A DNA stretch of 64,000 bases from Adineta vaga (GCA_021613535.1 CP075497.1:6138001-6202000), one strand, 5' to 3'. Counted from the first letter of the stretch, positions 39,643 to 64,000 are shown. Numbers and translations: made by a program. The notes: generated by a model from the letters alone, not told the origin.

Positions 39643-42600
39643 ATGAATGAATGTTATTATTATCTACTGATTCTAAGTTTATTCAGTAGTTTGAAACATT
39701 CACATTCATATAAAACGGATATTTCAAATGAATTAACGAATGTTACTATTCAACATATCTGTGAAAATGATTTACTTATTATCAAATGTTTAAATATAAA
39801 TGAAACAATTCAAATTGTCCGTTCTATGTATGGACGAACATCACAAAGAATATGTAATCATGATTTAACAGCTCGTTTTTTTGATAAAACATGTGCAAAT
39901 ATTGAACAATCAAAATATCAAACAAAACTTCAGTAAAAATTCATTTTCTCTTGTTATTTCTTATTAGAAATTTCTTTTTCTAGATGTCAAGACAAATCTA
40001 CATGTCAAATTTTAATTGATAATCAAATTTTTACAGATCCATGTGGTTTAACTATTCCTAAACATTTCGAAGTACATTATCGGTGTGTGAATAAAGGTAA
40101 AGAAAATCTGCAGAAGAATTTATCGATTAAATTTCTCTTTTTAGAAAAAATTTGTTCGAAATTACTTCTCAATTGTTCAAAATCAAAAGATATCAAATGT
40201 ATTGAAAAAATTCAAGAAGATTTTTCATGTTTATGTCCGTCAACAATTTGTCGATACAGTATATAATTGATTTTAAACAGAACTAAATGATGAATAAATT
40301 GGTTTTAGATAAAAAACGGATAATTGGATTTATTGAAAACGTTTGTCCAGAGGAGAATCTTCAAGGTCATCGATGGAGTACAACAGCGATAAATAAAAAT
40401 CAATCTTTTCCATGTCCTTCTCCTTGTCATGGTAACACAAACTGATGATTATGTATGTGAAATTTTAATCTTGAATTTTTCTCTCTAGGAAAAATCTCAC
40501 GTTTCTGTCAATCTAATCGTCAATGGTCAGAAGCAAATTATACTAATTGTGAATGTCCGATAAAACAATCCGATCAAGTAATGTTTATTTTTGATTGAGA
40601 TTTTCATTCATTGTTTCTAATGATTAGTTATCAACACATCGTTCGGCCAATGGCTATGTCTTTCAATGTAATTTTTGGCTAATCAATCGAATATTGCCTA
40701 AGGATAATCCATGCATTCTTGTCTGTAGTGTTCTTTATTCATTAATCGTTGAATTTAGTTTTCATTTTTATGTCTAGTCATTTGCCAATTGGAATGAACA
40801 AACCAATGATGATGATGACAGTCAATCAATGAATTGTCTTTTAAGTGCCTTCGAACGAATGACATTTCAATCATGTTTATTAACAAATTCATTTGGAATT
40901 CATTTTGAAAATTTAATTTTTGAAATTTATTTTCCAAAACGAAATGAAAGTAAATTTCATTTCTTAACAAATAATTATGATCGAGTAACAAACATTCCAT
41001 TTAATCAAATTCTTATCGATCGAACGAATAGAATCAAAGAACATTCTCATGCTAATTTACCAATGATGGTTATCGATACGAAAAATCAATCAATTATTTT
41101 AATTGAACAAGGAAATGATTTCAGTTCAGTACAAACGGGCAATGTTACCGTGATATTTAAACGACCGGTTAGTCTATTGATTACAACTTGTTCTTCTCTT
41201 AAGTGCCATATGAGTTATCTAATGTACTATATAATTAACTGAACAGATCATCTGATTACGACATATCATTTGAATAGGACAGTCATTTTTATCTTGAGAC
41301 AATGGAATGTTGTAGAATTCTTCATAAGTTTTTCTTTTTCTATTTTCATAAAGATAAGATCAGTTATGTTCATCAATCATCCGTCTGACATGAAAAGATA
41401 TTTGAAGATAATCTCACTGATGAAAAGACATATTTCATGCATAAAATCTCCGCATTTACCTTGAAATCTATTCTCTTCTTCTTTTTCTCTCTCATTTTTA
41501 GTCATCAGAATATTATTATTATTATCAATGTCGCGCTTATCGTTCAACAAATTTCTCATTACACATCGAGTAAGTCCAAAACAACCTTCTCGCTTGGTCA
41601 TCTTCTTCTAATCATATATTTTGTTTGATCTAGTTCGACAAATATGTTTTTTGCATGTCAATCATTATGTTCAAACACTAGTCATGTTATATGTCAATGT
41701 CCATTTTTCAATCCATTCATGCATTATCACTTGCACATCGATGTAAACGAAAACAATTGATTGATTTTTGATTTATTAATTCATGAATTTTTTCTCGTTG
41801 TAGAAATTGAGAAAGGCAAATGAATTCAGTGAAGAATGTTTAGAAGATATCAATCATACGATGAATGAGAATTTGAATAGAATTGATCGATATATGAAAG
41901 AGATTTCATCGTTACAATCTGCTAAAGTTTGTTTGATCAATAAGAATAAATTAATTCAAGAATTGTTGAATTTGCTTTATAGAAACTTCTTCTATTTATT
42001 GACAAATTAATTGAACGAGAATATAATTGGAATATGACCTATCGAATGATTAAACAAATGGAATATCTTGGTTTAAAAATAGTTCGTTTAACGAAATCGT
42101 TTGTTTCAATTCAATCTCATCTTGGTAAAGGAATTGAATATCTTGAGATTAAAATGAATGTTCGGCTTTTTTTTAAGAATTTTTTATTGAATCGAACAAA
42201 ATTCAAGTTGAGAATTCGAATCAATCAATTGCAATTTCATTTCCAAATAAGAAGAATCAAGATACAGATTTTCAATTGGTATTCTTCACAATTTCATATC
42301 CAAATCAAACAAATTTATTCAACAGTCATATTGTTACTGTCTATTCTTCACCCAAAGGTCAATTGAATGGTAATATTCAAATAAAATTTCGTCATTTAAA
42401 TGAATCCGAACAAATTTCAATTTGTGTTTATTTGAAAAATATTGAAAAGTAAAGAAATTCAAGTGTTTCCTTTTCTTTCACTATCCAATTGATTTCATTT
42501 TTAGTATTATGCAATGGAGTACAGATGGTTGTCAATTATTATCAACAAATTCAACTCATTCGATATGTTCATGTAATCATTTGAGTAATACATTTGCTTT

Positions 42601-44491
42601 ATTAAGAAATTATCAAAAGGTTTGTTTGAAAATTTATCAGAAAAATATCTTCGATAGATTTATTTGTATAGTCGACAATGAAATCTGATACAAATCATAC
42701 ATTACCGATTTCAAAGATTGGCTGTATGATTTCCATTATATGTCTTCTATTGACAATCGTTTTGCTGATTATTATGCGGTAATAATTTCATACTTATAAA
42801 TAGAATCCAATTGATCAATAATAATTTTGATAAATACTCAAAATTAAGTACATCGATTGATATTTGAATTACATAATAGAATTGATGAAGCGAAATATCA
42901 TTATACTTCAATATTATAAATGAGTTTCTGATGAGTTTATATTTCTTAACCTTCGATTTCTTTTTGTTGATATTATTGACTCCTTTATATTACATGAAAA
43001 GTAGTCAATCTATATTATCATTTGTTTGTTTGATAGATCTCATACGAATGTTGATGATGATGATGATGATTTGACAACTGTTCGAAGTATTCTTCATACA
43101 AATATGTTATTATGTTTAATTATTGTACAAATATTGTTTCTATTTGGCATTGATCAAACCAGATATAAAGTAAAATGAAGAGAATTCTTTTCAATTCTTA
43201 AGTTTTTCTTGCAATTAATTTTAGTTTGGATGTCGAATTATATCTATCCTATTAGATTATTTTCTTCTTGCAACTATTTCTTGGATGTTTGTTGATGGTA
43301 TTGAATTGTTAATTGCTCTTAAACATGTTTTTAAAATTGATCGAATACGTTTAATTGCTTATTCATTATATTCATATGGATTTCCTTTACTTATTGTTTT
43401 TCTATCAATATCACTATCAGCTAAAATTGAAAATGAATCAAATCAATAGTATGTATAAAATTAAATTTCTGAGATGTTTTTCTTTTCTCATTTAATTCGT
43501 TTAGTTGTTGGCTATCTCATGATAATTCATTCATCTGGGCATTTGCGATACCATTCGTACTTCTAATACTGGTAAGTGATGGAGAGTTACATTGTTTTGA
43601 AATGAATATTGGTTCATTTTTATAGGCAAACCTTTGCTTCTTTATTATATCGATCCATTCAATCTGTAAAAAGACAAATCCATCGGAATACATCAGTAAA
43701 ATCAGGTTTGTAAAGTAAACCTTAAGAATTCTATAAAAATATTTCGTTTTTTTTTAGAATTTCATTACGTGATATGTCAATAATATCGATTTTATTTGGT
43801 TTAACATGGATAATCGCTTTAGTTTATCTCTATGGTCAAACAATTTCATTTGCATATATATTCACTATATTAAATTCTTTTCATGGTTTACTAATATTTC
43901 TATTCTATGGTTTAATACAAAAATGTATACAAAATTCTTTGACAAACTTTTGTTTTCACAAAAATTCTCATCGATCGGTAATAAAATCTTTGAAATCAAT
44001 GAAATCTAATGAATATTTATCGTTTTAGTTCTTTCATTGTTTTATGCGATCAAGTCGAAATCAAACTCATATGCGTAAGAATCAGTTAGCCGTTTTGCAT
44101 AGAATCACTTCAAAAATGAATTTTCTTTTTAGATAAAAAATCGCTCGAACATTTTTCACTACCTGATAATACAAGTAGTAGTGGCTATAGTTCAGCACAT
44201 TCAACGGATCTTAACAATAAGCAATTATTATGTAATCAAACATTAGATTATTCAACTCATTTATCACGACCAATATCGTTTCCGAATAATCATTATAATA
44301 GACGATCATGTTTGGTTCATGAAACTTCGTATTTACCAAGTATACCAAATAATTTACTACCAAATCGTCTTAGTACATTTCGCTATCAATTACCAGCGAA
44401 TGAAACTATTGTTTCTCATGAACAGAATGAACAATTACTTCAAAAACTCCAAATTCATGATGATGATCATCAGTATTATGAGATTGGTTGA
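39643..44491 (+). CDS. Latrophilin/CIRL-like adhesion GPCR
   Basis: Signal peptide, rhamnose-binding lectin domain (CEND..I.C...MYGRTS..IC...DPC...K.FEV.Y.C), hormone-receptor motif, GPS (WSTDGC...CSCNHLS), and a secretin-class 7TM ([31 protein letters not shown]). Middle exons not fully resolved. Confidence 0.87.
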
Positions 44492-44991
44492 TTATTTCAT
44501 TTGTATGTTTTTCTTTGTATCTTTTTACTGTCCGGTGTTATATAAATAACAAATAAAAGTAATAATAGTTTCTTTGAAAATCTTTCTGTTCTTGTTTTAT
44601 TTCATATTTAATAGCAAACAATAAACAAATTTTGCAATCAGACGGAAATATACTAGAATTCATTGAAATTAGGAGTTAAACATTTTGAGAATATGATCAA
44701 GGTCTAATTATGCATGTGTTTGAGTGAGAATAACAAGGGTATTCCAATTAGGACTTTCAAATATCGTTTTTCTTTCAATTCGACTTTGATTTATACATTT
44801 GAATGATTATAATGAGTTTCTTTTCTAATCGTTGAATACAGATGGAATTACATTGCAATGCGAAAGTTAATGAGAAAAAGACAATAAACAAATATTTTGA
44901 TATAAGATCCAAAGTATTCTCTAGTCTACATCGATACCATCGATTATCTTGATACATTTCAATATAAATTAATAGTAAATAAAACTATCAC

Positions 44992-45283: not shown

Positions 45284-46811
45284 CTAATGTTCTGGAATAA
45301 GGCGTCTGTTCAATGTCGGAGTTAAATATTTTCGCTGTAAACTGTAATATGATGATGACGGAGGAAGAGGTTCCCTACGAAATAGAAAACGAAACCTCAA
45401 GTAAAAATAAATATGTTGGCGAAACGTCGACGATGAAAGTGCATATATGAAAGGATCAATGCATGCTGCTATCTTAGCGAATAAACCAGTTATTGAAGTT
45501 GTGTACATATTTATGAGATGACTAGGACCAAATTGAGATAGTATTGTCATCAATGCATACGGTGTCCAAGCCAAACAATAGATACCACATATTAGTAATG
45601 CCATACGAGTAGCACGAACTTCGGTACGACGAAAAACTTGTTTCATATGTTTATTTTCACCTAATTCAAGAACACTTTTTACTTTATCCTGTGATATTTC
45701 ATTATTCAATGAATGAAGTGGAATAAAACAGTAAATAATTCCTTGTTTCACTTGCTTATAGGGACTGTCATCAGTATCATTAAAATATTTAAGAGAACGA
45801 CCACGTTTCGATAGTTTCATTAAAATAATTGTATATGATACTATAATTATTGTTAATGGAATCAAAAATCCACCAATTATTAACACCAACATAAACGAAC
45901 GATTCCATCGATCTTTCGACACATAATCAAATGTACAACTTGTACCAAATCCTTCAAATACAAAACGATTCCATCCAAACAATGGCCCGATCATCCATAT
46001 CAAACCATACATCCAACTACAAACAATACATTCTATCAAATCAAACATGCAAATATATATATAGACAACGTTAGGAAAAAGAGCGAAAATACAAACTGAA
46101 TGTAAATTGTGTAGTTAACTTTAATGAACTAAATGGATCAATGACAGCCATGAGTCGAGTAAGTGCAATTGCTGCCATTGTTGCAATGGATGTGAGACCA
46201 CAGAGACCACCGGTGAATGCATAGAAGTTACAACCTAAAATTCGGTTGATAAAATTATGTACAAGAAGACATCATCAAATGAAAGTAGATGTGGTTTTGT
46301 TGTTAAAATAAAATTTACTAAATGATTCAAAATATGATTTTCGATGAACTCGGTAAACATCTTTAAATATATCTTATTTTCACATTCTCTCAAATCGAGT
46401 TCTTTTTTAAAATTGATTCAATCACATTTCATGCGGAAAATTGTTATTCGAGAGTTCAGGAAATACAAAAAGAAAATTACCTATTTGTCCAAATGGCCAA
46501 TATTCATTAAATGACGCAATAACATGTAGTGTATTATTTGTAACAAGCAATCCAAGATCAGTAACAGCAAGATTAATAAGAAGAAAATTACTTGGTTGTC
46601 GTAATCTTGAATTTCTATTAACAAATACATACATGATTCCATGAAAAAAACAAAGATTTTATTTTTTATACCTGACAAATACAAAAATGACCAGACAATT
46701 AGTTAGTGATCCACATAGTAGACATAAGAGAGAAACTACACCTATTCCATAATGCCATATAACCGATACTGAAGTACTCATGTTGGTAGATACAATTAAA
46801 TCGAGGTTCAT
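45284..46811 (-). CDS. Opsin A (rhabdomeric-like, divergent), four exons
   Basis: LRQPSNFLLINLAVTD, WPFGQIGCNFYAF, PLFGWNRFVFEGFGTSCTFDY, LAWTPYA and TM7 LFAK (Lys296 equivalent, 45473-45475). Confidence 0.9.
45799..46286. repeat. Near-identical inverted repeat, partner of 61594-62091
   Basis: Reverse complement matches 61594-62091 apart from one substitution and the (TA)n length. Confidence 0.93.
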
Positions 46812-48046
46812 TGGAAATATGTTGTTTGTTGAATAGTTTTCTTCCCGTTTTTACTCTATCTTACTCTAATAAAAGTAGGGAAGGGAGCAGAATAAAATTT
46901 CTTTATTATCTTTTATAGAAGTGCGACCAGAAAAAGAATTCTGCATTTTGTCATGAACATATTTATTACAACTCCTATTCCAATAATTTGATATCTATGC
47001 ATGATTTCATAGACGCATGATGTATTCTGATCATATAAACGATTAGTATATAACACGAAACAATGTGAGAAAACCTGTTTAACATCCCGAAAGAGAATTG
47101 ACATTACACATTCTCCTTCTATCAAAATAAATGGATAAACAACGAAACTGTTTCAACTATCCTTGTGACTTGGAAGAACACCATTTCTATATAACCGAAG
47201 CGTCAAGTTGAAATGACGATGTTACATTAATTATAAATAATTCCCATGCTGTTATGACTGACAAGACAGTAATTTGAAGAGGACTAGCTTCAATTCAACA
47301 GCTAGCCTCGATAATCTTTGTCTTATTATTGAGTTGATATCATACGATATGTTGTGTTAGTAGTTGGTTTATTAAAAAAGAGCCTTTGCATAACTTAGAA
47401 TTTGAACAATGACGAAAGATTATATCTCATATTTCCTCGAAAAGATTTTTTTACGATAGATTTATGAATGAATACCAAACATATATTAATAAGCACTGCA
47501 AAAAAAATAGGGCATGTTATTTATGAGTCTCTTCTCATATATTTCTTTCTTTGGAAAGGCGAACCGTATCTTTGAACATCGATATTCTATTCAAATGAAT
47601 TCTGAGTATGTAGATACATACATATATATTTCATTTCATTCATTCGGTATTAATTTGAATATTTTGATTTACTGGGAGAAAAAAATCAGTTGGAATCTAA
47701 AGAATATGTTCTGTTTATTTGTGAAAAAGTTAATAGTTGAATTAGAATCAGTGAATGATATCAATTTCGTTTTTCTTCCCACTCGTTTCGTTGTTAATAC
47801 AGTGTAAGAACATCTTCTATCACTTGTTAAATTATCTATCTTGAAATATTGATCGATGTGAAATATGCCAATAGTGTTTTATTTATGACGAACGAAAATA
47901 ATCAATAGTAGAAAAAAAATACTGTAAAAACAACAACAACAACAACAACAATGAAACGAAAGAAGATATTTGTTCCAAAGTTTGAATTGTCACAAATGAC
48001 TTAGATGTTTCTAATTTTTCAATTTATCTCTCTTATCTATTTTTCT

Positions 48047-48138
48047 AAATCGATAAAAAGCAAAAGGTCAGATGTCAAGTCTGTAATAAATCATTACTTT
48101 AAACTTGAATCGTCATGAGGAAATCAAGTTATCAATTT
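48047..48138 (-). promoter_or_regulatory. SECIS element (type II) in the SELENOT 3' UTR
   Basis: Minus strand reads AUGAC-GAUUCAAGUUU-AAA-GUAAU(GAUUU)AUUAC-AGACUUGACAUC-UGAC, with lower helix AAAUUGAUAA/UUAUCGAUUU. Confidence 0.88.
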
Positions 48139-48231
48139 AGTAATAGATAAAAAGAAGATAATTTCAAATTGAAACATTAAAGACAAAAAGTAAGAAAAGA
48201 AACTTTGGATTTTTGTATTTAAGACTAGAAA

Positions 48232-48953
48232 TTAGAAACGGGCAGCAGAATTCATGTTTGAATTCGTTGTAAATGTTTGTAACATTTGAACAAATTCATT
48301 CGCTGATGGTAAACGGCCTGTTTCAAGTTTTGACCAAAGTGGAACATCGTTCACTGATATTTCGAATGCACCCGTTGAAATTAAACTTGATTCAATTGAA
48401 TTTGAAAGGAAAAATACCATTAAACATGCATACATTTTATTTTGTAACGCCCATGAAAATACTGCTGGAGTAGGAATATTTAAAAGTACAAAAGGGTTTT
48501 GACCAAAAAGGAGACAAACAAGTAACGCCATTTTAACCATAGATATTACACGAGCTATTAAAGCTTTGGTAGGTGGTGGTGGGTAATTTTCACCAACAAC
48601 TTCCAATTCAGGATAGTGTGTTCGGACAAGTTGTGCAAACTGTTCAAACACATTTCGGTACCTTAAAAATATGAAATCATTTCTTCAAAAGAAAATTCAA
48701 ATAATCAAATAGTTTACCCTCAGCTATTGCAAAAGAGAAATGTAATTGTTGGTATACCATGCTTTTTGATTTTAGGCGTTGGAATAGTTGAAGATTTTAC
48801 ATACGATTCATCGGAATGGCTATCGAAAGATGATGAAGTAGATTCTGTTGTTTTTGAATCAGTTACTGGAGGATTTAAATATACTTGTGTCAAATCATAA
48901 CATGTTGATAGAAGAACAAGACCTAGACCGAATAAAATCTTTCGGTCCATCAT
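48232..48953 (-). CDS. SELENOT: Selenoprotein T
   Basis: N-terminal hydrophobic leader; FLFCNS-UGA-G|YRNVFEQF (CxxU, TGA at 48720-48722, intron 48662-48717); GENYPP, NKMYACLMVFFLSN and STGAFEI..ND.P.WSKLETGRLP. Confidence 0.95.
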
Positions 48954-50018
48954 GTTCAACGATGACTGTCGACAAGTCTGGTCTGATCTAACTGATCTTT
49001 TTAAAAATATCAAAATAAATAAATCACAGTTAGGAACAAACATTAGAGGTGTAAACCAATCAGCAACTGATAAGATAATATCAGATTGAAATTGTTAATC
49101 AACGACATCTACAGGATCATAAGAGAGAATACATATAGATACTTCTCTATTCAATTTAAACATAAATTCATTGCAAAACTCGTTAAAAACAATTCTTCGA
49201 TCTAAGAAAACGATCATGAGAAGAGAAAACGTTCCGCACATTTAGTTAGTTCTTTCTTTTGTTCTTATTAAAAACTAACGCTATTAAAAAACATGACAAA
49301 ACAGTTCAGCTTTTCAAATAATTAATTTCTGTTGTTTTGTTGAGTTCTACATGATGAGTACTTCTTTCATTCTTCTGTCAACAGAGTGGATAATGATTTT
49401 TCTGAACTATTCGAGGAAAGTCGAGCATTCTCAATTGTATCTTATAACTGAGTATCTGACAAGATTTAAATGAGATTTCCTTTGATTCTATTCTTATTAT
49501 CTGTGATATTTTTATCATATGAATGTCTTATTGTTCAAGAAAAGTATTTCATTTCGTTTCGTTTCGTTTCGTTTTCTTATGAAAGATATTGACAAATTCT
49601 TATATTTCATTCTTTTTCTCGGTTTTTTTCAATCTAATTTATCACAGAATGTTAAAAAGTCTTTTTTCTCCTTTAAAAAAAACGAACGACACAACAGAAA
49701 AAAAACTGACATTCTAATTATCATTGAATATTCTTTATTCTTACTTCATTCTTTTTTCTTTGTCAATTATTCCTAAAGCTTCGAATCTCTTCATTTTTAT
49801 TAGAAACAGAAACAAAGGTGTAAAATTTTCTATTACTGATACGTGATTGAAAGTCGAACGAACCAGGACAATATTAAGAAAAAACCAAAAAAAGTCCAAT
49901 AAGAACAATCTATGGTAATTTATTCTCTCATCATTGCCGAAGCCATCCAAAACTATACAGTGTTGAAACACTGATCATATTCTTTTCTTCTCTTTATTTC
50001 AAAGTATAACTCAAACGA

Positions 50019-50948
50019 ATGGCAGCAAATCATAAATCAACAAAACAAACGACAATAACGTTTCCTAAATCAAATGACTTTCGTCTAAAATTTCCTTCAA
50101 CTAAAACTCCCAATACAAAACCATGTGCAACATCTCCAAATCGTTCAAATAATTCACAGATACCAAAAACTTCACTTATCTATCCAACATTAATTACGCG
50201 TTCACCCTCATCATACTATTCAAATCATCAACAATATTCACAAGATACACGTTATCTATATGTTGTTAATGCATCTGGAAATTCTCATCGAACGCCATCA
50301 ACACAACCACACAACATCAATTTAAATTCAGTACCACTTCATCAACAATCTCATATATTAACTTCATCATCAGTTTCACAGCCACATCCACATTATGGTC
50401 ATTTTCTCGCGTATCTTCGACGGCAATCTTTAGCTCGTCTACGTCGTAAACAAGAACAACAAGAATTAGATGGTGCTGAAAGTGTAGACACAACAATAAC
50501 ATCGAATACAAATAAAACATCATCTCATTCATTACACTCGATATCAAATCTGTCTCTTGGAATATTAACATCAGACGTAACATCGATGCCTGCAATGTCT
50601 TCGACATCAAAACAAAAACCTAGACCTATAACACCACATCGTCAATTGCAACGATCATCATCGTCGTTACCAACAAATTATCGTTTGAAATTAAATCAAT
50701 CCTTACCATTGAGACAAATAACATCATTGGATATAGAAAAGGAAAAGACTGCTAACACTCATTCATTATTATTGCCAATGAAAGCAGACAGTAGTACACC
50801 AGCAAATTCACTTGTTAGTGAAGCAAATGCATCATCAACAAATAAAACTCCTTACGAAGTGAATTTAAGTGGTGATATGCTTAGTTATTGTTATGTGAGT
50901 GATAGCGGAGTTACATATCAAGGACAGTTACTTTCTTCTCTTGTTTAA
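50019..50948 (+). CDS. Uncharacterised Ser/Thr/Pro-rich protein (309 aa)
   Basis: Long ATG-initiated ORF in AT-rich DNA with host-like codon usage; no recognisable domain. Confidence 0.7.
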   Translation: MAANHKSTKQTTITFPKSNDFRLKFPSTKTPNTKPCATSPNRSNNSQIPKTSLIYPTLITRSPSSYYSNHQQYSQDTRYLYVVNASGNSHRTPSTQPHNINLNSVPLHQQSHILTSSSVSQPHPHYGHFLAYLRRQSLARLRRKQEQQELDGAESVDTTITSNTNKTSSHSLHSISNLSLGILTSDVTSMPAMSSTSKQKPRPITPHRQLQRSSSSLPTNYRLKLNQSLPLRQITSLDIEKEKTANTHSLLLPMKADSSTPANSLVSEANASSTNKTPYEVNLSGDMLSYCYVSDSGVTYQGQLLSSLV

Positions 50949-51011
50949 TGACAATATTTTCATTTTCTTATTATTAATATACAAAAAAGCAAAGTTTCAT
51001 TGTTGTTTTCT

Positions 51012-52147
51012 TCATTTGAAAAATTTCGACAGGACAGAAGATGTTTTGGACGGTGGTCGTTTTGTTGTTATCGATGTTGTTGCTTGAGATGTATTATGCG
51101 TTGTAACAGGCGAGCCTGCTTTTGTCGTTGATGAAGTTAATAAATTTGAATGAGATGAATGAATCGATGATTGTGAATCAAGTTTAACTAATTTACCTAA
51201 TTTTTGTGTAAAATTAGCGGGTAAAGGTGGTGGTAATGGGATAGTTGATGGTGGTATTTTTTCTGTTTCATTTAATAATGTAAAATGAATTGATGAATTT
51301 GATGAGGAAGATGATGAAGGAGAAGGAAAATTCATATTTGAATTCATTGGTATAGTTGATGATGGTTCTTCATCAATTGAATTCGATGCAACAACACGTT
51401 CACGTTCTTTTCGTACTTCTCGTACAGTTCGATGAAATAACTGTTGAACATATTCATAATCATCAGCTGCTGTTGTTTCACAAAATGCACAACTAAATTT
51501 TGCAGCAATAGCTTCACCTTCACATTTTGGAATTACTCTATAAAAATTAGAATAATAAAAAACATCGTATCAAAACGATCATTTACCTTGTTCGATCAAG
51601 ATCAAGTTTATTACCCAACAATATCAACACCAATTCATTTGATGAAACACTTAAACTTTTCGAATAATTAGTAATTGCATCTAAATAAGCCAAGGCCATT
51701 TCAAAACTATCCTGCTGAGTAATACTGTAAGTTATTAAGACAGCATCAGCCCATTTTAAATAATAAGGTAAACGTTTATCATCCTTAGAAGGAAATAAGT
51801 GTAAAATTATTCATCAATAAAACAATCTTTCCTATACTTTTCCGTATGTATCCATTACTTTAACAAGTACTTCTTGATGATCAACAGTATCTGGCTTCCA
51901 ATATGTATCTTCTAGAAAAAAAAGAATATCATTTCAATTTCAATTTCAATTTCAATTCAAACAAATCTTTCTAACCAAGAAATGGATCATATTCACAGAT
52001 AAAACGTTTTGTTAAATATTTCACAACTAATGCTGATTTGCCCACATTTTGTTTGCCAAGTAAAACAATATTAACTTCTTCTTTCGGTAAACTAATCGTT
52101 GATTGATGACTTTTAATCAAACTACTCGTTGGTTTATATCGAATCAT
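51012..52147 (-). CDS. RERG/RASL11/RASL12-like small GTPase
   Basis: Four exons: [49 protein letters not shown] and CETTAA; Ser/Pro-rich tail with no CAAX. Confidence 0.88.
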
Positions 52148-52207
52148 GATGATTTACTAAACATAAATGTATTACTAATAATGATTCGACTGTTCTTTTT
52201 CTTCTCT

Positions 52208-52234
52208 GATAGATAGATAGATAGATAGATAGAT
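52208..52234. repeat. (GATA)n microsatellite
   Basis: gatagatagatag... run. Confidence 0.85.
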
Positions 52235-55200
52235 ATGCTTACTCACGTCATATATCAATGACATTACAGAAGAACAAAAGAACGACAAAATACACACTGA
52301 CATCATCTTCGTGCTAGTGCCACTCCTTTTGACAGTACATATAACAAAGTTAGAACATTAATACAGAACGAGAGAGAGAGAGAGATGCATAGTGTGCATA
52401 AGATACAAAAATAATATGTAGATAGAAAAGGCCATAATATAGATAGAGTGGTACCATCTTTGACTACTACAGATGTTTAAGATATATCGAAGGGCGACGA
52501 GAAAAAAATCGATCATTAAGAAAAGAGAAAAGAACATATGAAGACATTTTCCTATACGAGATTATGATGATCCAGGAAAATATTGATTTATTTATTCATT
52601 TGTTATACAATTGTTTGTAAAAATCGTCTCTTTAATATCTGTACAGATCAACTCTATGATCCAGGTTAACAAATCTGTGCGTCGTTATGCAAAGAATCAA
52701 AATATTTTGAAGATAAATTCATTCAGAGTTTGATATTATTGTACTTATTGATCAGATATAAATTCATCTAAGATAATCGATCAATATGTGAACTTGATTT
52801 AAGGAAAATATTACGTCGATTTTACATCAAGATGTGATGACATTCAGTCTATCATTATGCGTCTGACTGAAAACTGATAGTAATATAAGAATTGTTTATC
52901 GAAATGTTTGTAAAAAATCAAATAATGATGTATGATTATATTACATATATAATAATTAATATCGACAACCACAGAGACTATCGTAGTTAACCAAGAATTG
53001 ATTGAAAGTAGAACATTTTCTCGTCTAGTAATTTATATAGAATATACAAATAGAATTGTTTATGCTATTTTGATTTGGTATTCATACTATCACATAAGTT
53101 TTTGATGAAATTTTTCTTTAGAAAGAAATAGAACCATGTGAATTATTCAAAGATATATCTTTGAGTGAAAAATTACCATGCCATTATTTCTCTTTCTGTA
53201 ACTTCTAACAATCTAATTTGTTTGTAAAAACACCCGGAAGAAATATACAAATCAATATTCATTCATAGTTTGTTGATTGTTAATGCAACCAAACCAAGAA
53301 GCTTTTGTTAATTGCATCATCTTCATTATTGTTGTTTGTAAATGAATAAACAGACAAAGAATAAAAGATTGTTTAAATTTTTTTCTAATCGAATAAATAG
53401 ATAAAAGTAATAAAAAGTAAGGCACAAAATTTTAGACATGACTTTTAGTTTGATGAAAAAGAACATACAGATGGTAATTTTTCCCGCCTTTGTGTCATAT
53501 ATTTTGTCTTCATGAGTCACGTGTGTGTTACCATAAAAAACTAGGATCAAGATTTTTCTCTAGAATCATTTTCGTGATTAAAATGCTTATAAACTCATTG
53601 ATTCATCTGAACAAACAGTTGGTTTCCGATCGTGATGAATTTCCTTGAGTTTATTTGCGTTGAAAAAGAAAAGTAAATTTCATCTAAAATCAATATGTTT
53701 TCTGGTTATATTTGTCATTATTCACGGTATTCTCACTGTTGCAAGTTGATTTCATTTCTAGAGTTTGACGTATGTATGTATGCGTATATATCGTTTTTTT
53801 TAAATATGCATTCAACAAAGAAAAACTTATTTATAATTGATAACGGCAGAAAGCATAGGAATGGGGTTTTTTTGTTCAATTAAATTTGACTGATGTCGGA
53901 GAAACGGAAGATGAGATACTTGAAATTTTTTTCTTCTTCTCCTCTGTTTGATTATTCAAATAAGTACCAAGAAAAAAGAAAAAGTCTAGTTGATATATTT
54001 GACAACGATATGAAGAGTAAGGTGAGTAGAACATATTTTAATTTTCAAAAATACTTCTTGACTATCAATTTAATCAGTCAGATCATATTACATTCAGAAG
54101 ATATACTAAATCTCTATACTATTTGTACGTAAAAAGTAGGACGATAAATGTATTCCTTTTGTTTTTTGTCGATATACGTATCACACACATATTACATACT
54201 AACTTGATCAATCAATCAATACATTTTTATCCTTTTGTGTTGCTTTAGTCCTTTGTAAATATGCTTAACAGATTCTACCTCGACTGCAAACATAACAACA
54301 CAGGTATTTAGCGCTTTTGTAATCTTACATAAAATCTCTAATGACTTGACATATATGATTATGTATTGAAGATTTCGATCTATACATATTATTTTCTTCA
54401 TCTTATGAATAAAGACGTGATGAATATCTTCCATATAAATCACAAAGTAGTGACATATATACGATTTTCTAAGTTTTACATATACTCCTTTTTCTTTATT
54501 TCTCTGATCATTATCGTTATATTATTTTTTTAATGTAAAACTCGTAAAAAAAAGAAGAGAACAGATGACTACGTCAATGTCTTGTTTTCATTAGCGAATC
54601 AATATTTAGATGCATGATGTAATTCTAATAGAAGTCACTTTCAAAATAAATGTGTAACTATTCAAATAACATATAGATGCAAAAAATAAATCGTCTGAGA
54701 TTCGTCAAGACGTCATTATTGTCGGTACAAAATCTTTATCGTACTGTACACAATGTACTACGTCAAATAAGCATTTTCTTTTGTTAGTAAAATGTTGTGG
54801 GTGGAAAAACACTCTAAGTTTAAGTAAAACAAAACAGCATAATATTTGACTGAATTAAATGTTTGAGAAATTTTCGAAAAAAAATGTGTCATTATGAAAA
54901 TAATTAAAAGGATTCATATAAAAGAACAAGTTCTATTGACAGAATCCATATAAGTATATACATCTTTTTGACAAATCTTGTCACAATTGTCAATAAAGTT
55001 AAATATATTACAAGAATAACCTTGACGATTTTATCAGAAATAGAGAATTTCGACGAGAAGAGAGATATGAAAGAATCTGATATCCATTAAGCAAAACTTT
55101 TCTTTTTCTTTACTCGTTTTGAATTTTTCTTTATTTGCTTGATAATGTGCATCGTCTAAGTGATTTTGATACGTGACAACACAATGAATAATAAAGGAAC

Positions 55201-55551
55201 ACAATATAGGTAACTTCTTTCTTTTTCTCTTTCATTTATTCACAAATCAATAATCATTTAAGAAGACAAATGATAACGAATTTATTGTTATTGACTGTCT
55301 TTTGGAAACGATTATTACCGTAGACAGTAATTTGACATCAAATCCTAAACACGTACAATATCCATCTGGACTCATTCCCTTGCCTTCCTTAACTTTTTTT
55401 TTTCTTCGATTCTCCACCTACGAAATCAAACCCATCTATCTTAATGTTATCAAACACAATTTACTCTTGATAAGTTTACATAACTAAATATTAACAAATC
55501 ATTGATTCTTCTTCCAGATGTTCGTCGTATAATTTAATTTACTTGATTTAA

Positions 55552-56757
55552 ATGGCTACGACAATCAGTTTTAATTTACCAAATGATGATGAAATGAAAC
55601 CAATCATTCAAACACAAGCTGAACATCAATATTTATTACGTCCACCAGCAAAAATCTTCAAACCGTTACCTCCAACGATCATACAAACAATTAAAAATGA
55701 ACGACAACAACGTCGTTTACAAGTTTCACATTCATCAGCAGATATTTTTAATATTAAACAATCATCAATTGATACAACAGATGAAGATTTTGAAGAAACA
55801 AATCGTTCACAAATAAAATCATCTCAATTGCCTCGTCAAAATAGACGTTGGAAATACGCATCACGTGCAAAACGTTCACCCTCAGAAATACGTGTTACAC
55901 TCTATCCAGATGAAAATATTGGTATTCATGAAAGTTTAACTCATAGTCAATCGGAAGTGTCAAGTCCAACAAGTCGACATGAACTACGCAAATCAGATTC
56001 ATCACTAACGGATAGAAAAGCAATAAAAACAAATACAACTGATTATTTACGACGTACTCTTCTTGAACATCGTTTTAGTCGTCGAGTAAATTCATCCTTT
56101 TCGTCTTCGACAACATTACGTTCATTGAGTCGACGTCGTTCAACACAAAATCTTTCTCCACGTCAATCAACAAATGTTCCACGTAACCGTCGGCATGCAC
56201 ACCATTTACCACGAAATTCAAAATGGCATATTGTTCGTCGTCGTTTACCTGATATTGCTATGATGAGTGAATCTTATGCTCGAATGAAATTACTTGAACA
56301 AGATTTACGTTGGCAGAATTTACGTGAAAAAATTCGTGCTCAAGTATATGATATGCGTGAAATGAATCTCTTACGACAACAAGATGATGGTTTAATATCG
56401 AAAAAGAAAACACAAAAGACAACATTTGATTTGAAGACCATTCCAGTTAATGAAGTTGTTCATGTTGAACGTGATGGACGAGTTTTTTCGATGAGTACTC
56501 GTGATCTTGTTCTTGGGCGTTTACTTGGTGCTGAAGATATACAATTAGATACATTTGCTCAATTAGATGCTCGACGACAATTTCAAGTACAACAACATTT
56601 ATTAAAACAACAAGAAGGAAGGACTCGTTTGAAGAAACACATTGCTTTCTCATTTTGTTTGTGCAATTTATCGTTTATTGTTCTTATGTTTGCTGCAATG
56701 TTTATTTCGGCTATGAGAACAATACTCGATTTAAGAGCAAGAAACTTTCTTTGGTAG
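55552..56757 (+). CDS. Uncharacterised Arg/Ser-rich protein with a C-terminal transmembrane helix (401 aa)
   Basis: Long single-exon ORF ending HIAFSFCLCNLSFIVLMFAAMFISAM plus a short tail. Confidence 0.75.
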   Translation: MATTISFNLPNDDEMKPIIQTQAEHQYLLRPPAKIFKPLPPTIIQTIKNERQQRRLQVSHSSADIFNIKQSSIDTTDEDFEETNRSQIKSSQLPRQNRRWKYASRAKRSPSEIRVTLYPDENIGIHESLTHSQSEVSSPTSRHELRKSDSSLTDRKAIKTNTTDYLRRTLLEHRFSRRVNSSFSSSTTLRSLSRRRSTQNLSPRQSTNVPRNRRHAHHLPRNSKWHIVRRRLPDIAMMSESYARMKLLEQDLRWQNLREKIRAQVYDMREMNLLRQQDDGLISKKKTQKTTFDLKTIPVNEVVHVERDGRVFSMSTRDLVLGRLLGAEDIQLDTFAQLDARRQFQVQQHLLKQQEGRTRLKKHIAFSFCLCNLSFIVLMFAAMFISAMRTILDLRARNFLW

Positions 56758-57812
56758 ATTTTTGTTTTTCTTTCACATCATCAGTCTCACGATTTTGAAT
56801 TTTTCAAAAGACTTCAATTTTTTCGTCTTTTTTTTATGCATTAATAGATATTTTTAATAATTATCAGGTACTTTCAAGTGTGTATAAACGTGTTCTTTTT
56901 TTGTATAATATAAAACGATTAAATACCTATCTTTATTACATATATAGTAAAAACGAACAAGATCATAAGATGTTAAAATATCTTAACAAATCGTCGTTTT
57001 TTTTTATGATATGAAAGAAAAAGAATGTTTGTAGAAAAATCTAATCGGTAATATTGAATGAAGTAATGTAAATTAATAAATACTGTATAGAACTTACAAG
57101 TATTCGATTTAACCTTGGTCGTATAATCAATATCATATGATGACATTTCTTTCTTTCTTTCTTTCAGAAAATTTATTCAATTTTCAATTGATTCGAACAG
57201 ATGAAAAAAAACTTAACATTCGAAGTTCTGCTTTTAATTATCCGTATCATCATTCTTTTGTTTTCCTCTCTATTTGTCCTTCTTAATCTAATGTTATCAA
57301 AGAACCTACTCAGTGTATAGCACATGCTCTTTTCTTTTTTTATTTATCGGTCTACTAACATCATCAGGTCTCTAAATCGCACAACAACAAGAAAAAGTGT
57401 TTTTTTTTTCTTCTTCTTCTTCTTCTTCTTCTTCTCCTCTTTCTCCTTCTTACTATTGTACCAATTCCACACTATGCCATTTTTTGCTTGTTTCTTTTTT
57501 TTTGTTCTTTTTATCATCACCATCACCACTATCGACATCAATTTATATAGAATAAATCATTCGTTTTTTTGCCAATTTCTACTTTCTGTTTCTTCCTTCT
57601 TATTTTCATTCTCTGAAGTCGTTTGTAAACGAATTGAATAAATCACCTGACAGTATTTCATTTTTCTCCTCTTCCTTCTCTCTCTTTTTCCTTTTTTCTA
57701 ACAATCAATCGGTCTCAACTAACAGATCAAATGTATGAATGAACTATCTTTTTTTATCCTCTATTCTATGCATCATGTTGAGTCATAGAACAATAGTAAA
57801 AACAAAAAGTTG

Positions 57813-59933
57813 ATGTCAACAACAACTCATAATCGTAATCGTAATCAAGCCTACTACACCTTTACATTCTATTCTTCTTTTTGTTACGTTTGTGGTCGAG
57901 TTTGCGAGCAAGTATATATGAAATATGGTACGTTATGTGCAAATTTTAAATGAAAACTTTTCATAATTGACTATTTTTATTAGCGTCTTCGTGAATTTTT
58001 TCGTGGTCCATCAAATAATGACCGAAAATCAACAATTTCTTTATCGAATTCATCACTTCTTCCAAATGTTGATGCGAATACTTTTGTTAACGCTGCTCAA
58101 GATAAGGATACTGACACATTACACAAGTATTTGCTTGCAGGTTAGTAACAAACAATGAATAACATTATGTTTGACATAAACATCATAATTCATTAAAGAG
58201 CAATAAGATCATATTTCAGGTTTCCCACCAGATCAACCAGATCCTTCTACAAAAGCAACAGCTTTACATGTTGCAGTTGAATCAGCTAATCTACGCGCTA
58301 TTCAAATGTTACTTCAAGCCGGTGCACAAGTCAATGCAACTGATATGAGTTCTTCGACGCCACTACATATTGCCGCTTATATGGGTTATGAAGAAGTGAG
58401 GTTAATTAATTGCTTGAGAAAGAACAGAAAATTTATATGATTATAGCTAGATGCGTAGATTGTACAGATACTTTTATCAAATGGTGCTGATATGTATAAA
58501 CAAGATAATACAGGTCGAAATGCATTTCATCTTGCTATATCAACAGGAAATCTTCGATTAGTTCAACATTTCCTTTCAACAGCTGATCCGGAACTAAATA
58601 TTTTACACAAACCTGATGCGTAAGCTGTTTTTCTTTGTTATATCTCAAATAAGAGAAAAGTATTGATCAGATTTGAAATTTTTATTATCTATTTAGTCAA
58701 AATTGGACACCTTTGATGTGTGCTTGTGCTAGTAATCATCCAGCAATATGTGCATTTCTCTTATCACATCATACAGATCTATGTGCAATTAATGATCGTC
58801 ATATGACAGCACTTCATATCGCTGCTTTTCTCGGTTCATTACCAGTTCTTCAAGAACTCCTAACATCATCATCATCATCATCTAATGATGAAAACATAAT
58901 AAAAGCACTTAATCAAGGTGATAATCGAAATCAAACTCCTTTATTCTATGCATGTATTGAAGGTCATCTTGATGTTGCATTAGTATTAATTCGTGCTGGT
59001 GCAAATGCTTATCATTTAGATAATGAGAATCAAACATGTTTACATGCAATGTTATCATCAACAATAATATTAAAAAGACATATACGTTTATTCTATCGTT
59101 TTATACAATTTGTTGATTATCATTCTTATCAAGATTGTCATGATCGAACTTTACTTGATCTTGCTTATTTAAATCAATTAAATACAATTATCTATTTATT
59201 AAATTCTTTAAATTATAAAACAAATGTGAATACTATTGTCAACCATGAACAGATTGAAAATCGTACATATCAACATGATAAACAAGTACTTTCTCTTCGT
59301 CATCTTTGTATTCTTCGTTTTAAGAATTCAATTGTCTATGTTCGAGATCAACGACAATCTACACAACATGATTTACTTGAAAAAGCATTACAAGAAACAT
59401 TTCAAATTAGTCCATTGAACGATTTAACAAATTCGAATGAAACAAATACAATGGAATGTTCATTTGGTAAATCATTAGATGATATTTCACTCTTACAACA
59501 ACAACAACAACTATCAAATAAATATCAAAAAAATGCAAAAGGAACAAAAAATCCCGAGAAAAAAATGAGAAAAACATCAACAATTTTTTCGACAATATCA
59601 TCATCATCATCATCAACAAATAAATGGTCGTCACAAATTGATTTACAACATTCACCTTCAACATGGTCCGTATTAACACATAAATTCAAAGGTCAACGAA
59701 CACTTCCACCATTAATCAATCCACAACAAATACTTTTCGAACAACCAACAGATTCATTACAATTATCAGCAATACATCCAATGAAAAATTTAGCTTTAAA
59801 AATGTTAATACCATCAACTAAACTCGAAGATTTACTAGATTTTCCTTCATTAAATAACAATCAGTTCCTTAATGATGATTTAAAAATGTCTATCAAGACA
59901 TATAATATATTAGATATAAATGCAACAAATTAA
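57813..59933 (+). CDS. Ankyrin-repeat protein with a SOCS/BC-box-like motif (ASB-like)
   Basis: Repeats TALHVA, TPLHIAA, NAFHLA, TPLMCA, TALHIAA, TPLFYA and TCLHA over spliced exons; VLSLRHLCILRF at 59286-59321. Confidence 0.85.
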
Positions 59934-60945
59934 ATATATACGTTCCTTATTATTTGTCGTTTTGATTATCATTTTTTTGTAAAGATATTCTATTTTTTTT
60001 TCTTATTTTTCCTTAGCTTTGATTCAAAATAAACAAGGAAATCAATGATTCGACTAAATGTCCTATTTAGGAAAACTTCTTGGTCTCTATTGAGCCAAAA
60101 TATGTCATTACGGATGTTGATCAATTCTTTCCTATTTAATAACGTTAAGTAGCATCTGCCGCTCAATATGTTGTTGAATCACAAAGTACACATTAGTCGA
60201 TTTGACGTAACTAAACTATAACGTGGGATGAACACAGAAGATCTTCAACTGCTAATTTTCGTGAGGAATGTATAATTATTTCTGAAAACTATCATGAGAA
60301 AAAGATGGAATCGAATTATTTCAGTGTAGTGGAGGGAAGTGTTTTAAAAGGTTAGAATTACTTTGACATATCGAATGATGTAGGATGAACAAAAGTGTAG
60401 GTTGTCATGTGTTTTTTTCAAGTCGATTTCATGGATGAACGAAGAATTGCAGTGATAATATCATTTCTCACTCATGCAATGCCTACAACACCTTGTATAA
60501 ACGAATGTCATAGAAAAATACATTTGTTTTCTTTATTTTTCACCTATTCATCTTTGGATTATTAATAGAGCCGCATATATAGTATGTATTGCGAGAGATA
60601 ATCCTAAACAGTTATTAAGAAAAGAAAAAGGACTGATTTAAGAGATTTTAGTTTTTATATATAATAGAAACTCATCTCGAGCACGTATTTTTTTAACGAT
60701 TGCCAGAAGCAGACAAGAAAAATAGAAATAATAATGGGAGCGGATGTAATTAATTGTCGTATATCATGCAAAAAAGAGATGAAATAAATCTTCGGAATAT
60801 CTCTCTATATTTGTAAGACTTGATACTTCAACTCATTTGCTCATATATAAATAAAAGACTACATAGAGCCTTTGTTTCTCTTCTATAGATATCTTGAACA
60901 CTCATAAATCTTTCTGCCATTTTTTTTCTAAACAAAAAATTACTA

Positions 60946-62585
60946 ATGAATAGCAATTCACCCTCCCATATCAATATGTCTGCATCAGTATCAGCTGTAT
61001 GGTATTATACAACAGGCATATACAGTACTTTATGTTTACTATGTGGATCCATGTTCAATGGTTTAGTCATCTTTGTGTTTCTCAGGTACGATACATTAGA
61101 TATTTATTTATTTCATGGGATTATATATATATATATATATATTTACTAATAGAAGTTCAAGATTACGACAACCAAGAAATTTTCTTCTTATTAATCTTGC
61201 TGTTACTGATATTGGATTACTAGTTACAAATAATACACTACATGCCATCGCATCATTCAATAAACACTGGTCATTCGGACAAATAGGTAATCTTTTACAT
61301 TTGTACATCAATCGTTTAGTATGCAAAAATCATTCTTATTATATTTCCATTGCCAAAAATATCAAAACATTAAAGTAATTAGATATGCATATCAAGATTC
61401 TTAGAGAATATGTGGAAGAATATATCTATTCAATTCAGATAAGATTTTTGTAAACATAAAATGTTGAGGTTTGAAAATGTATCAGTAACGTTTCTCAATT
61501 TGTTGAAATAGAGTGGAAATGATCATCATACTGTTTATCGAAAATAAAGTACGGCTATCTTCTCTTGCATGGAAAAGCAGTAGAAAATCTATAACTTTCA
61601 TTTGATGATGTCTTCTTGTACATAATTTTATCAACCGAATTTTAGGTTGTAACTTCTATGCATTCGCCGGTGGTCTCTGTGGTCTCACATCCATTGCAAC
61701 AATGGCAGCAATTGCACTTACTCGACTCATGGCTGTCATTGATCCATTTAGTTCATTAAAGTTAACTACACAATTTACATTCAGTTTGTATTTTCGCTCT
61801 TTTTCCTAACGTTGTCTATATATATATATATATATATTTGCATGTTTGATTTGATAGAATGTATTGTTTGTAGTTGGATGTATGGTTTGATATGGATGAT
61901 CGGGCCATTGTTTGGATGGAATCGTTTTGTATTTGAAGGATTTGGTACAAGTTGTACATTTGATTATGTGTCGAAAGATCGATGGAATCGTTCGTTTATG
62001 TTGGTGTTAATAATTGGTGGATTTTTGATTCCATTAACAATAATTATAGTATCATATACAATTATTTTAATGAAACTATCGAAACGTGGTCATCAAATCT
62101 TGTATCGTAGTAATCTAAAACAGATAGCACGCTTACAACTAAATTATGAACCGAGCACGTATTGTGTTACGTCTTATAATTCATTATTTGACGAAGAAAT
62201 TCTTACTAAATCGACCATTGATGCATCAGTAAATAATCATCAATCCGCTCAAAAGATTTCTCATATAGAATTTCGTGCTACCCGTACGGCATTACTAATA
62301 TGTGGTATTTATTGTATGGCTTGGACACCGTATGCAGTGATGGCAATATTATCTCAACTTGGTCCTAGTCATCTCATAAATGTGTACACAACTTCAATAA
62401 TTGGTTTGTTTACTAAAACAGCAGCCTGTATAAATCCTTTGATCTATGTATTTTCATCACCTATCTTTCGTCGTTGTCTATTTCATCAGTCAACATTTTG
62501 GCAGTACAAAATAACATCACCTGAAAATTGTTCAAATCAAAAGAGAATCTATTTATCAAACTTAACGAGTAATCATTCACATTAA
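60946..62585 (+). CDS. Opsin B (paralog of opsin A), four exons
   Basis: Same intron positions as opsin A; LRQPRNFLLINLAVTD, EGFGTSCTFDY, AWTPYA and LFTKTAACINPLIY (Lys at 62415-62417). Confidence 0.9.
61594..62091. repeat. Near-identical inverted repeat, partner of 45799-46286
   Basis: Direct comparison of both copies. Confidence 0.93.
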
Positions 62586-62990
62586 AAATGATAATATCCA
62601 AGCATTGCTAACACAAATGGATCTAATGGCATTTCGTTGACGAAAAACAACTAAAAAACATATTTATCATTGTTGTATTTGTATTAAGGATATATGGACA
62701 TATATACTAGATGTCGCCTCTAGACAGATCTATTTCGTTTTCTGTTTTAAGTTTGAATATATACTTTTGCATAATTATTTCAAGAGTTTTTGTTGTAAAG
62801 AATATTTTCAATTATATTAATTAATAAAAATCATAATTAGTTTTGTATAATTCTGACTGGTTAAAATCTCTGATATGTTTTAACTGATTTTTCATCTCGT
62901 CTGTCTCATCAAAAGACACAGTGTTCTGTTTTTTTCTTCGATTTACAAACATGCTTTTGTAAACTCTTCCAAAATTTGTTATCAACAACT

Positions 62991-63655
62991 ATGTCAACAT
63001 CGGTTAGTGCATTTCGTTGGCTTGATATTCTTGAAAAAGAATTTGATAAAGCTTTTGTTGATATCGATCTATTACTTGGAGAAATTGATCCAGATCAATC
63101 AGAAATTACTGATGAAGGTCGAGCAAAAATGACTATACTAAGTTCATGTTTTGCACAATTAGCCCATAAAGCGCAAACTATCTCACAAGTAAATGCGAAA
63201 TTAGAAGTATGTAGAATATTTTCTTTCAATCTCTTTTAACATTAAATTTGATTAGGCTCAGTTACTTGATGTTCGAACAGAGACTGTCGAAGTAATGGCA
63301 GATCGACAAGCATTAGAACAACAATTGAAAGAGATTATGGCACAATTACATGCATCACAATTAGAATATCAAGTATTAAAAAATCAAGGAGAAATTGAAG
63401 GTGCTGAAAAGATACTTATTAAATTGGTTTGTTTTTTTTTTATGAAGAAGATGTTATTGTTAATGAAATATTTATTTAGGAAGAACAAATAGCTAAACAA
63501 CGTGAAGAATATAAACAGAATGCAATACCAGAAATTAAAGTACATGAAATCGAAAAAGAAAACGAAAAATTAAAAACACAGATCCTTAATCTTCAATCGG
63601 AAATCTATGGATCACGTTTAGCTGCAAAATATCTTGATAAAGAATTAGCTGGAAG
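62991..63655 (+). CDS. GOPC: Golgi-associated PDZ and coiled-coil protein, 3' part beyond window
   Basis: [42 protein letters not shown] and [22 protein letters not shown]. Confidence 0.95.
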
Positions 63656-64000
63656 GTAAATTTTCAAATCTAACTATTTAGATAGGAACATTCTTAGGAC
63701 ATAATAAACTTCATGCATATTATCAGATACTACTTGTTATTTTAGTAATTGAGAGCTTGAAATGTAGATTACCTCTATTGTAAGGTTCTTCAAAGAATTA
63801 ATCTGAAGAAAAATGTACATTAGGAAAAACAAACTACAATCATTAATCGTTTATTCAATTATAAGTCGAGTATTATTAGTAGCATGTATTTAGTGGTTTG
63901 GTTTTGAGAGTTGAAATCGTTCCTTGCCGATCTATAATAAGCAACAAAAAAAAACAACTCTTATTACGCTTTGCGATTTTCTCATCCATTCAACACAACA

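Follow-up and report, generated by a model that had tools for sequence, protein, structure and literature searches.

Gene Conversion between Opsin Paralogs

Conversion between duplicated opsin genes, including inverted pairs, is already well documented (PMC5714168). The closest described case is the LWS-1/LWS-3 pair of poeciliid fish, where inverted paralogs lie a few kb apart and have undergone recurrent conversion that takes in introns (Sandkam et al. 2017, PMC5714168). The converted parts of these genes cluster within species, while the unconverted untranslated regions (UTRs) recover the history of the duplication, and a self-reinforcing process of conversion has been proposed (PMC5714168). 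Homogenisation at the level of exons and introns is also described, in studies that the same paper cites, between the tandem opsins of primates (L/M) and of fish (SWS2 and RH2) (cited in PMC5714168). Here, a pair of inverted opsin genes, opsin A and opsin B, is described in the asexual bdelloid Adineta vaga. They lie in a 64,000-nucleotide stretch of chromosome-scale contig 6 (GCA_021613535.1, CP075497.1:6138001-6202000), the whole of which is called the window below, and they share a near-identical tract of nearly 0.5 kb. Very probably, the tract is the most recent result of non-reciprocal gene conversion that has recurred within the chromosome between two ancient r-opsin-like paralogs.

The Adineta pair resembles LWS-1/LWS-3 in its inverted arrangement, in the recurrence of conversion across introns, and in the grouping of the converted parts by species. 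The fish genes, however, are vertebrate c-type cone opsins of sexual species and the extent of their tracts varies widely, whereas the Adineta genes are r-opsin-like, belong to asexual bdelloids, and have a tract limited to transmembrane helices (TM) 3 to 5 in three lineages. Furthermore, five unrelated genes lie between the Adineta copies, and conversion has occurred separately on two diverged homologues. The primate L/M and fish SWS2/RH2 pairs are head-to-tail and undergo unequal crossing-over; in contrast, a crossover between the inverted Adineta copies would invert the interval rather than delete or duplicate it. Given the documented opsin cases, the Adineta pair is an ordinary one and calls for no new mechanism.

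Conversion is familiar from bdelloids as well. In A. vaga itself, gene conversion was reportedly found by Flot et al. in 2013, with a signal mainly between allelic regions. The conversion described here is of the same kind, a homogenising non-crossover repair in an asexual lineage, but differs from that allelic signal in that the template is a paralog in cis.

A Near-Identical Tract in Two Inverted Opsin Genes

The two genes are arranged 5'-to-5' in opposite orientation, ~14 kb apart. Their models were obtained by reading the sequence and translating its frames, and agree with the NCBI models. In protein searches, exons were used separately and full-length proteins were the database models; synonymous (dS) and nonsynonymous (dN) divergence was estimated exon by exon from whole codons.

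45284-46811, minus strand: opsin A (I4U23_029196, 386 amino acids (aa)); exons 46811-46672, 46614-46481, 46234-46097 and 46032-45284 (with stop)
60946-62585, plus strand: opsin B (I4U23_029202, 379 aa); exons 60946-61085, 61153-61286, 61646-61783 and 61858-62585 (with stop)
45799-46286, minus strand: putative converted tract, copy A, 488 bp; 52 nt of intron 2, exon 3, intron 3 (64 nt) and 234 nt of exon 4
61594-62091, plus strand: putative converted tract, copy B, 498 bp; 52 nt of intron 2, exon 3, intron 3 (74 nt) and 234 nt of exon 4

A first-pass annotation, made from the sequence alone, had pointed to an inverted tract of ~490 bp that is nearly identical between the genes, introns included. 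This is borne out by a repeat search, by blastn and by reading of both strands: 45799-46286 (minus) and 61594-62091 (plus), 488 and 498 bp long, differ by one mismatch and one gap. The repeat search returns the tract as two pairs of complementary arms, 45799-46063 / 61827-62091 and 46053-46286 / 61594-61827. Both differences named in that annotation could be placed by reading each strand. The lone substitution, at 46214/61666, is ACC (Thr) in A and GCC (Ala) in B, and the lone gap is a microsatellite in intron 3, with (TA)5 at 46054-46063 in A and (TA)10 at 61817-61836 in B.

The tract begins with the last 52 nt of intron 2 and runs through exon 3 and intron 3 into the first 234 nt of exon 4, a coverage that agrees with the gene models and with the earlier description. 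It encodes TM3 (exon 3) as well as TM4, extracellular loop 2 (ECL2) and TM5 (exon 4), and ends at ...SKRG, where intracellular loop 3 (ICL3) starts. The Tyr at the position-113 counterion site and Glu181 both fall within the homogenised part.

Outside these limits identity drops sharply. Exons 1-2 are 80.5% identical between A and B over 266 nt, and TM6-TM7 87.4% over 191 nt. Intron 2 differs in length (246 nt in A, 359 nt in B) and cannot be aligned beyond the tract, while ICL3 and the C-terminal tails give no A-B alignment. The rest of intron 2, ICL3 and the tails had been called barely alignable; this description fits those parts but not the flanking exons, which are 80-87% identical. The contrast drawn between a homogenised TM3, ECL2 and TM4-TM5 and a distinct ICL3 and tails was correct.

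Thus, 487 of 488 positions are identical in the block, against 80-87% in its flanks. At a background identity of 0.80-0.874, the probability of at least 487 matches in 488 is ~1e-45 to 1e-27. Intron 3 and the 52 nt of intron 2 are the same in both copies apart from the microsatellite, and dS is 0 in the tract exons. Since introns and synonymous sites are identical too, constraint on the protein is not the source of the identity, and purifying selection was rejected as an explanation. No second repeat of such length was found by the repeat search in the window. A search of the A. vaga genome (100.8 Mb, six contigs) found, beyond the pair, one further copy only, 68% identical and located on contig 3. 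An origin of the tract as a transposable element was also rejected, since it has only these two copies and the 68%-identical ohnolog, and consists of in-frame opsin sequence.

Both genes are best described as r-opsin-like G protein-coupled receptors (GPCRs) on the basis of sequence. In protein searches, opsin A is a 100% match to I4U23_029196 and opsin B matches I4U23_029202; the Pfam domain 7tm_1 (PF00001) is found at 3e-25 in opsin A and 3e-22 in opsin B. Among solved structures, the best relatives are squid rhodopsin (5e-25) and jumping-spider rhodopsin, with vertebrate opsins behind, and metagenome relatives are labelled 'r-opsin' by JGI. In opsin A, the TM7 Lys lies in a FAK motif and corresponds in the alignment to the FAK Lys by which squid rhodopsin binds retinal; opsin B carries FTK, with its Lys at the matching position. 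The qualified name is used because the canonical DRY of TM3 is TRL in all contig-6-type copies, and the HPK motif is missing, SSSTF and SSPIF standing at the place of squid SHPKF. Opsin A also has DPFIY instead of NPxxY. A literature search turned up no paper devoted to bdelloid opsins.

The Same Segment Is Homogenised Independently in Adineta ricciae

In the reference assembly of A. ricciae (GCA_905250025.1), the pair is found on two haplotype contigs, both of which carry the same diverging opsins, the same five interval genes and the same outer neighbours. The interval holds an Rdx/SelT gene, a 312-aa orphan, a Ras/Roc GTPase, a 401/403-aa orphan and an ankyrin gene, in the order and orientation seen in A. 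vaga, with a lectin/GPS 7tm_2 receptor beyond A and a PDZ gene beyond B. By tblastx, 34-64 kb of the window is collinear with A. ricciae haplotype 1, gene for gene.

The comparison of tract and flanks across species, proposed in the first-pass annotation, separates the two clearly: the tract groups by genome and the flanks by orthology. In protein alignments, the ICL3, tail and N-terminal motifs match A with A and B with B across species. A tree of the region from ICL3 to the C-terminus joins the B copies of the two species (support 98/97) and likewise their A copies (87/85). In a tree of TM3-TM5, in contrast, the copies of one species fall together, as do those of one haplotype within A. ricciae (93/90 and 85/77). 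A tree of the N-terminal part by itself gives no resolution, so the orthology of the N-termini rests on motif matches and conserved neighbours.

Site patterns agree with the trees. In the tract exons, 59 sites (with haplotype 1) or 52 (with haplotype 2) fit a grouping by species, and none follows orthology. Within A. ricciae, 22 tract sites group the copies of one haplotype in cis and 0 group alleles by type, while for exon 2 and TM6-7 the corresponding counts are 0 and 57. The incongruence is therefore seen both in the trees and in the sites, whose counts stand at 59:0 and 22:0 for the tract but at 0:57 for the flanks.

In A. ricciae, the tract measures 396 bp and has the same ends in both haplotypes, from the exon-3 acceptor to ...IIIVSY, 11 codons before the end of the A. 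vaga tract. Within it, A and B are 97.2% identical in haplotype 1 and 96.5% in haplotype 2, but only 90.4% across haplotypes. Over the whole gene the two haplotypes are about 91.4% identical, and in the flanking exons 1-2, A and B are 74-77% identical. These comparisons demonstrate that the opsin pair is older than the split of A. vaga and A. ricciae. Because the tract groups by species and by haplotype, the same segment must have been homogenised after the relevant splits, at least three times independently, namely in A. vaga and in each of the two A. ricciae haplotypes.

The independent assembly also bears on whether the A. vaga tract might be an artefact, with truly different copies made alike by collapse or by cross-polishing with short reads. 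The A. vaga tract comes from a single assembly, and its identity (99.8%) exceeds that in A. ricciae (96.5-97.2%), as an artefact could produce. However, the borders are sharp and lie inside otherwise well-resolved unique sequence, and each copy retains a private single-nucleotide difference and its own (TA)n length. Polishing cannot bring a divergence of 15-20% down to 0.2%. In A. ricciae, moreover, the same segment is alike in two haplotypes at non-zero divergence, with shared variants specific to each haplotype, so simple collapse is ruled out there. Since an independent assembly has the same pattern at non-zero divergence, an artefact in A. vaga is unlikely, and as a full explanation of the tract it is very improbable.

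Two further observations concern the A. ricciae alleles and gene models. In the allelic comparison of the tract (A copies 10658-11053, B copies 10485-10880, in locus coordinates), dS of the converted exon-4 block is 0.34-0.38, against 0.04-0.18 in the flanking exons, a two- to eight-fold excess based on few sites. Conversion in opposite directions on the two homologues would fit this high allelic dS, again judging from few sites. Separately, an internal GT is used in the deposited A-type models (363 aa), which thereby lose the final 19 codons of exon 2. The true opsin A of A. ricciae is probably 382 aa long, because the DNA of exon 2 (about 10380-10640 of the locus) encodes an intact end, ...NLLHTIASFNKQWPFGKIG, followed by a normal donor.

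Probable Older Layers of Conversion in A. vaga

Two further blocks of the A. vaga genes are set apart by a low dS between the copies.

45420-45629, minus strand: TM6-TM7 block, copy A; 85-87% identical to 62261-62470, dS 0.30
62261-62470, plus strand: TM6-TM7 block, copy B; partner of 45420-45629
46473-46634, minus strand: exon 2 block, copy A; 88% identical to 61133-61294
61133-61294, plus strand: exon 2 block, copy B; partner of 46473-46634

Between A and B, dS in exon 1 is 0.84 in A. vaga (A. ricciae was left out here on account of unequal lengths). In exon 2 (66-nt core) it is 0.12 in A. vaga and about 1.1 in A. ricciae, and in TM6-7 it is 0.30 and 0.83-1.13, respectively. In the tract exons it is 0 in A. 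vaga (exon 3 and the exon-4 part) and 0-0.07 in A. ricciae. Orthologues of the two species differ by a dS of about 0.5-1.0. Exon 2 and TM6-TM7 of A. vaga have probably been converted too, at an earlier time than the tract, because their A-B dS lies below that between orthologues. The TM6-7 tree joins the two A. vaga copies weakly (84/78).

How the Tract May Be Kept Alike

The tract and flank patterns show that the homogenisation took place in cis and without net inversion; the transfer, which has left both copies alike, was probably non-reciprocal. Recent ectopic conversion, as the first-pass annotation proposed, is strongly supported and extended to A. ricciae.

In mechanistic terms, a break in one opsin copy would be repaired on the template of the inverted paralog without a crossover, by a route of the synthesis-dependent strand-annealing type. 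Conversion may be limited to TM3-TM5 because this is the sole long island of homology left, bordered by the long unalignable intron 2 on one side and the fast-evolving ICL3 on the other, with the short intron 3 copied along with its exons. The ends of the tract do coincide with the ends of alignable sequence in intron 2 and ICL3. Each conversion would renew the identity of the island and keep it usable, while the flanks drift out of reach. Such self-reinforcement could account for the repeated use of one block.

Selection offers a different account of the borders. It may keep the retinal-pocket module the same and remove conversions that reach into ICL3, the tail or the N-terminus, giving two receptors with shared spectra but different coupling or regulation. 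This speculative account draws on the homogenisation of the same module in three lineages with nearly the same ends, and on the conservation of ICL3 and tails by type across species. On the other hand, the tract ends where alignable sequence ends, as a mechanical barrier of homology predicts, and the older conversion in exon 2 and TM6-7 of A. vaga indicates that the border of the module is not strict. An adaptive restriction is rather unlikely, and it is similarly doubtful that selection against the erasure of ICL3 and tail differences acts as an additional cause of the tract limits.

Several points count against recurrent conversion as set out here. GC content and GC at third codon positions (GC3) show no consistent excess in the tract over its flanks, and thus no signature of biased conversion. 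The homology-island account of the borders is an inferred one, and selection against conversions that erase ICL3 and tails would look alike. Lastly, the A. vaga data are a single haploid assembly, in which cross-polishing could have inflated a high identity to near 100%.

Orientation of the Interval

The first-pass annotation also raised the possibility that the tract is the recombination site of an invertible segment of 15 kb. Crossovers would then flip the interval and yield chimeric opsins (A5'/B3' and B5'/A3'), and both orientations would be present in populations or clones. The geometry permits this, since the repeat arms are inverted, almost 0.5 kb long and about 100% identical, and the interval is in fact inverted between the ohnologous regions of contigs 6 and 3. 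However, A. vaga and both A. ricciae reference haplotypes share one orientation in their assemblies and are collinear over about 30 kb, and the N-terminal, ICL3 and tail motifs remain matched by type. No recombinase domain was found in those interval open reading frames (ORFs) that were scanned with Pfam, a scan that returned only Rdx and ankyrin domains and left two orphans without a domain.

One A. ricciae contig does have exactly the predicted A5'-tract-B3'-PDZ join. In a second assembly, GCA_905250095.1, contig CAJNOR010001578.1 (10001-11565) reads Rdx-A5'-tract-B3'-PDZ, and the public protein model derived from it, CAF1166932.1, is a chimera that joins the 5' part of opsin A to the 3' part of opsin B. 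The contig is identical to the A side of reference haplotype 2 (A2) until the last part of the tract and to the B side (B2) downstream, where 10.5 kb align without a mismatch. It changes from one to the other within the longest run of identity between A2 and B2, about 148 bp, and the orphan 5' half of B2 is found on a 2.6-kb contig, CAJNOR010012089.1, that ends in the same run. The reference assembly was made from whole-genome-amplified Illumina DNA, and for each sample its authors also produced a further assembly that was more fragmented (PMC7943196); GCA_905250095.1 may be this companion assembly. The chimeric contig appears to derive from the same data, because it is base-identical to the reference contigs on both sides. 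CAF1166932.1 was accordingly rejected as evidence of an inversion, and its contig is most likely the result of graph ambiguity or a repeat-induced misjoin.

With the chimera attributed to assembly ambiguity, the invertible segment is left unsupported, and there is scarcely any likelihood that the tract serves as its recombination site. There is likewise only a slight chance that the tract occasionally resolves as a crossover, so that the 15-kb flip and the chimeric opsins (the promoter and N-terminus of A on the ICL3 and tail of B, and the reverse) segregate in clonal bdelloids. If this were true, the reversed interval of the ohnologous region would record one such flip that became fixed.

Neighbouring Genes and the Origin of the Pair

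The genes around the opsins were read from ORFs, from tblastx collinearity and from gene tables of A. ricciae.

46812-60945, no strand: interval between the two 5' ends, 14.1 kb, with five genes (ORF reading, tblastx, A. ricciae gene tables)
~47.9-49.05 kb, minus strand: Rdx/SelT-like gene (Pfam on interval ORFs, Rdx)
50019-50948, plus strand: 309-aa orphan ORF, intronless (no Pfam match)
~51.0-52.5 kb, minus strand: Ras/Roc GTPase (named from orthologous gene tables)
55552-56757, plus strand: 401-aa orphan ORF, intronless (no Pfam match)
~57.3-59.95 kb, plus strand: ankyrin-repeat gene (Pfam on interval ORFs, ankyrin)
38900-44650, plus strand: lectin/GPS adhesion-type 7tm_2 receptor, outer neighbour 3' of opsin A (tblastx collinearity, gene tables)
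62980-64000, plus strand: PDZ-domain gene, outer neighbour 3' of opsin B, running past the window end (tblastx, gene tables)

The 7tm_2 receptor adjoins the 3' end of an opsin also in A. ricciae, A. steineri, Rotaria and on contig 3. In the same genomes and on contig 3, the ORFs at 50019-50948 and 55552-56757 keep their position and orientation; they are bdelloid orphan genes. A 26-bp match of 96% between 43049-43073, beyond opsin A, and 59593-59618, in the ankyrin gene, is probably due to chance.

The order of genes on contig 6 is 7tm2-opsinA-Rdx-312-Ras-401-Ank-opsinB-PDZ. The ohnologous region of contig 3, read in reverse, is 7tm2-opsin-Ank-401-Ras-312-Rdx-PDZ, with one opsin. Relative to the outer flanks, the interval of contig 3 is thus inverted compared with contig 6, and its PDZ counterpart adjoins Rdx with no opsin between. 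Copy A retains the 3' neighbour of the contig-3 opsin and copy B its 5' neighbour. Where an inversion arises from staggered breaks, inverted duplications can remain at its breakpoints (PMC1885836), and the Adineta locus bears such a footprint: inverted duplicates flank a segment, each with one ancestral neighbour, and the other arrangement has a single copy. Rotaria, too, fits this picture, as its two opsin loci, Ank-opsin-7tm2 and Rdx-opsin-7tm2, show both types of neighbour.

Given the lone opsin of contig 3 and its reversed interval, the pair may have arisen when an inversion from Rdx to Ank duplicated the opsin at one breakpoint; the chances of this are about even. In the trees, A and B fall together and the contig-3 type lies separately, which favours a duplication on the contig-6 lineage. 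The arrangement is like the breakpoints of Ranz et al. 2007 (PMC1885836), where a gene-sized segment is single in the standard arrangement and doubled and inverted at the ends of the inverted segment. Unlike the sister species in that study, however, the Adineta comparison is between ohnologous regions of a degenerate tetraploid, and the copies, which are old, have partly been kept alike by conversion.

Other evidence tells against this history. The Rotaria opsin with A-type neighbours falls outside the clade of Adineta A and B, so the breakpoint model needs an early phase of whole-gene homogenisation. The loci compared are all from bdelloids, and the direction of the inversion is presumed. 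A B-type copy was not found in A. steineri or Rotaria, either at loci that reach only 10 kb from the A copy, short of the place of B, or among the protein matches. It is also possible that the order was the reverse, with the pair existing first and a crossover followed by the loss of one copy on contig 3.

Two opsin models in these regions deserve a comment. The contig-3 opsin lies at 9806126-9807341, and its model (I4U23_013861, 320 aa) starts inside exon 2. It looks N-terminally truncated, because tblastx matches to opsin exon 1 begin on contig 3 at about 9806126. In A. steineri (GCA_905250045.1), contig 244 (10001-11529 of the locus) has a partial opsin with exons 1-3 only, of which the protein model covers exons 1-2. 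About 12 kb separate it from the full opsin at the A position, with the 7tm_2 and kinase genes in between, and the spacing of its exons matches that of the other A. steineri haplotype. Either a haplotig misjoin or a genuine partial duplication would explain this gene fragment.

Implications for Repair in Bdelloids

The locus is a compact and well-controlled case of concerted evolution limited to one functional module of a receptor, in three lineages, with orthologous flanks that serve as an internal clock. For practical purposes, two cautions follow from it. Such tracts give rise to chimeric contigs in short-read assemblies, and a tree of these paralogs based on TM3-TM5 would make the duplication look far younger than it is.

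For bdelloid biology, the tract suggests that breaks at the opsin locus are repaired from a paralog 14 kb away in cis. In the A. ricciae tract, cis paralogs (about 97%) are more alike than alleles (about 90%), so repair in cis would be more recent there than any exchange between the homologues. The locus therefore bears on the choice of repair template in an asexual animal.

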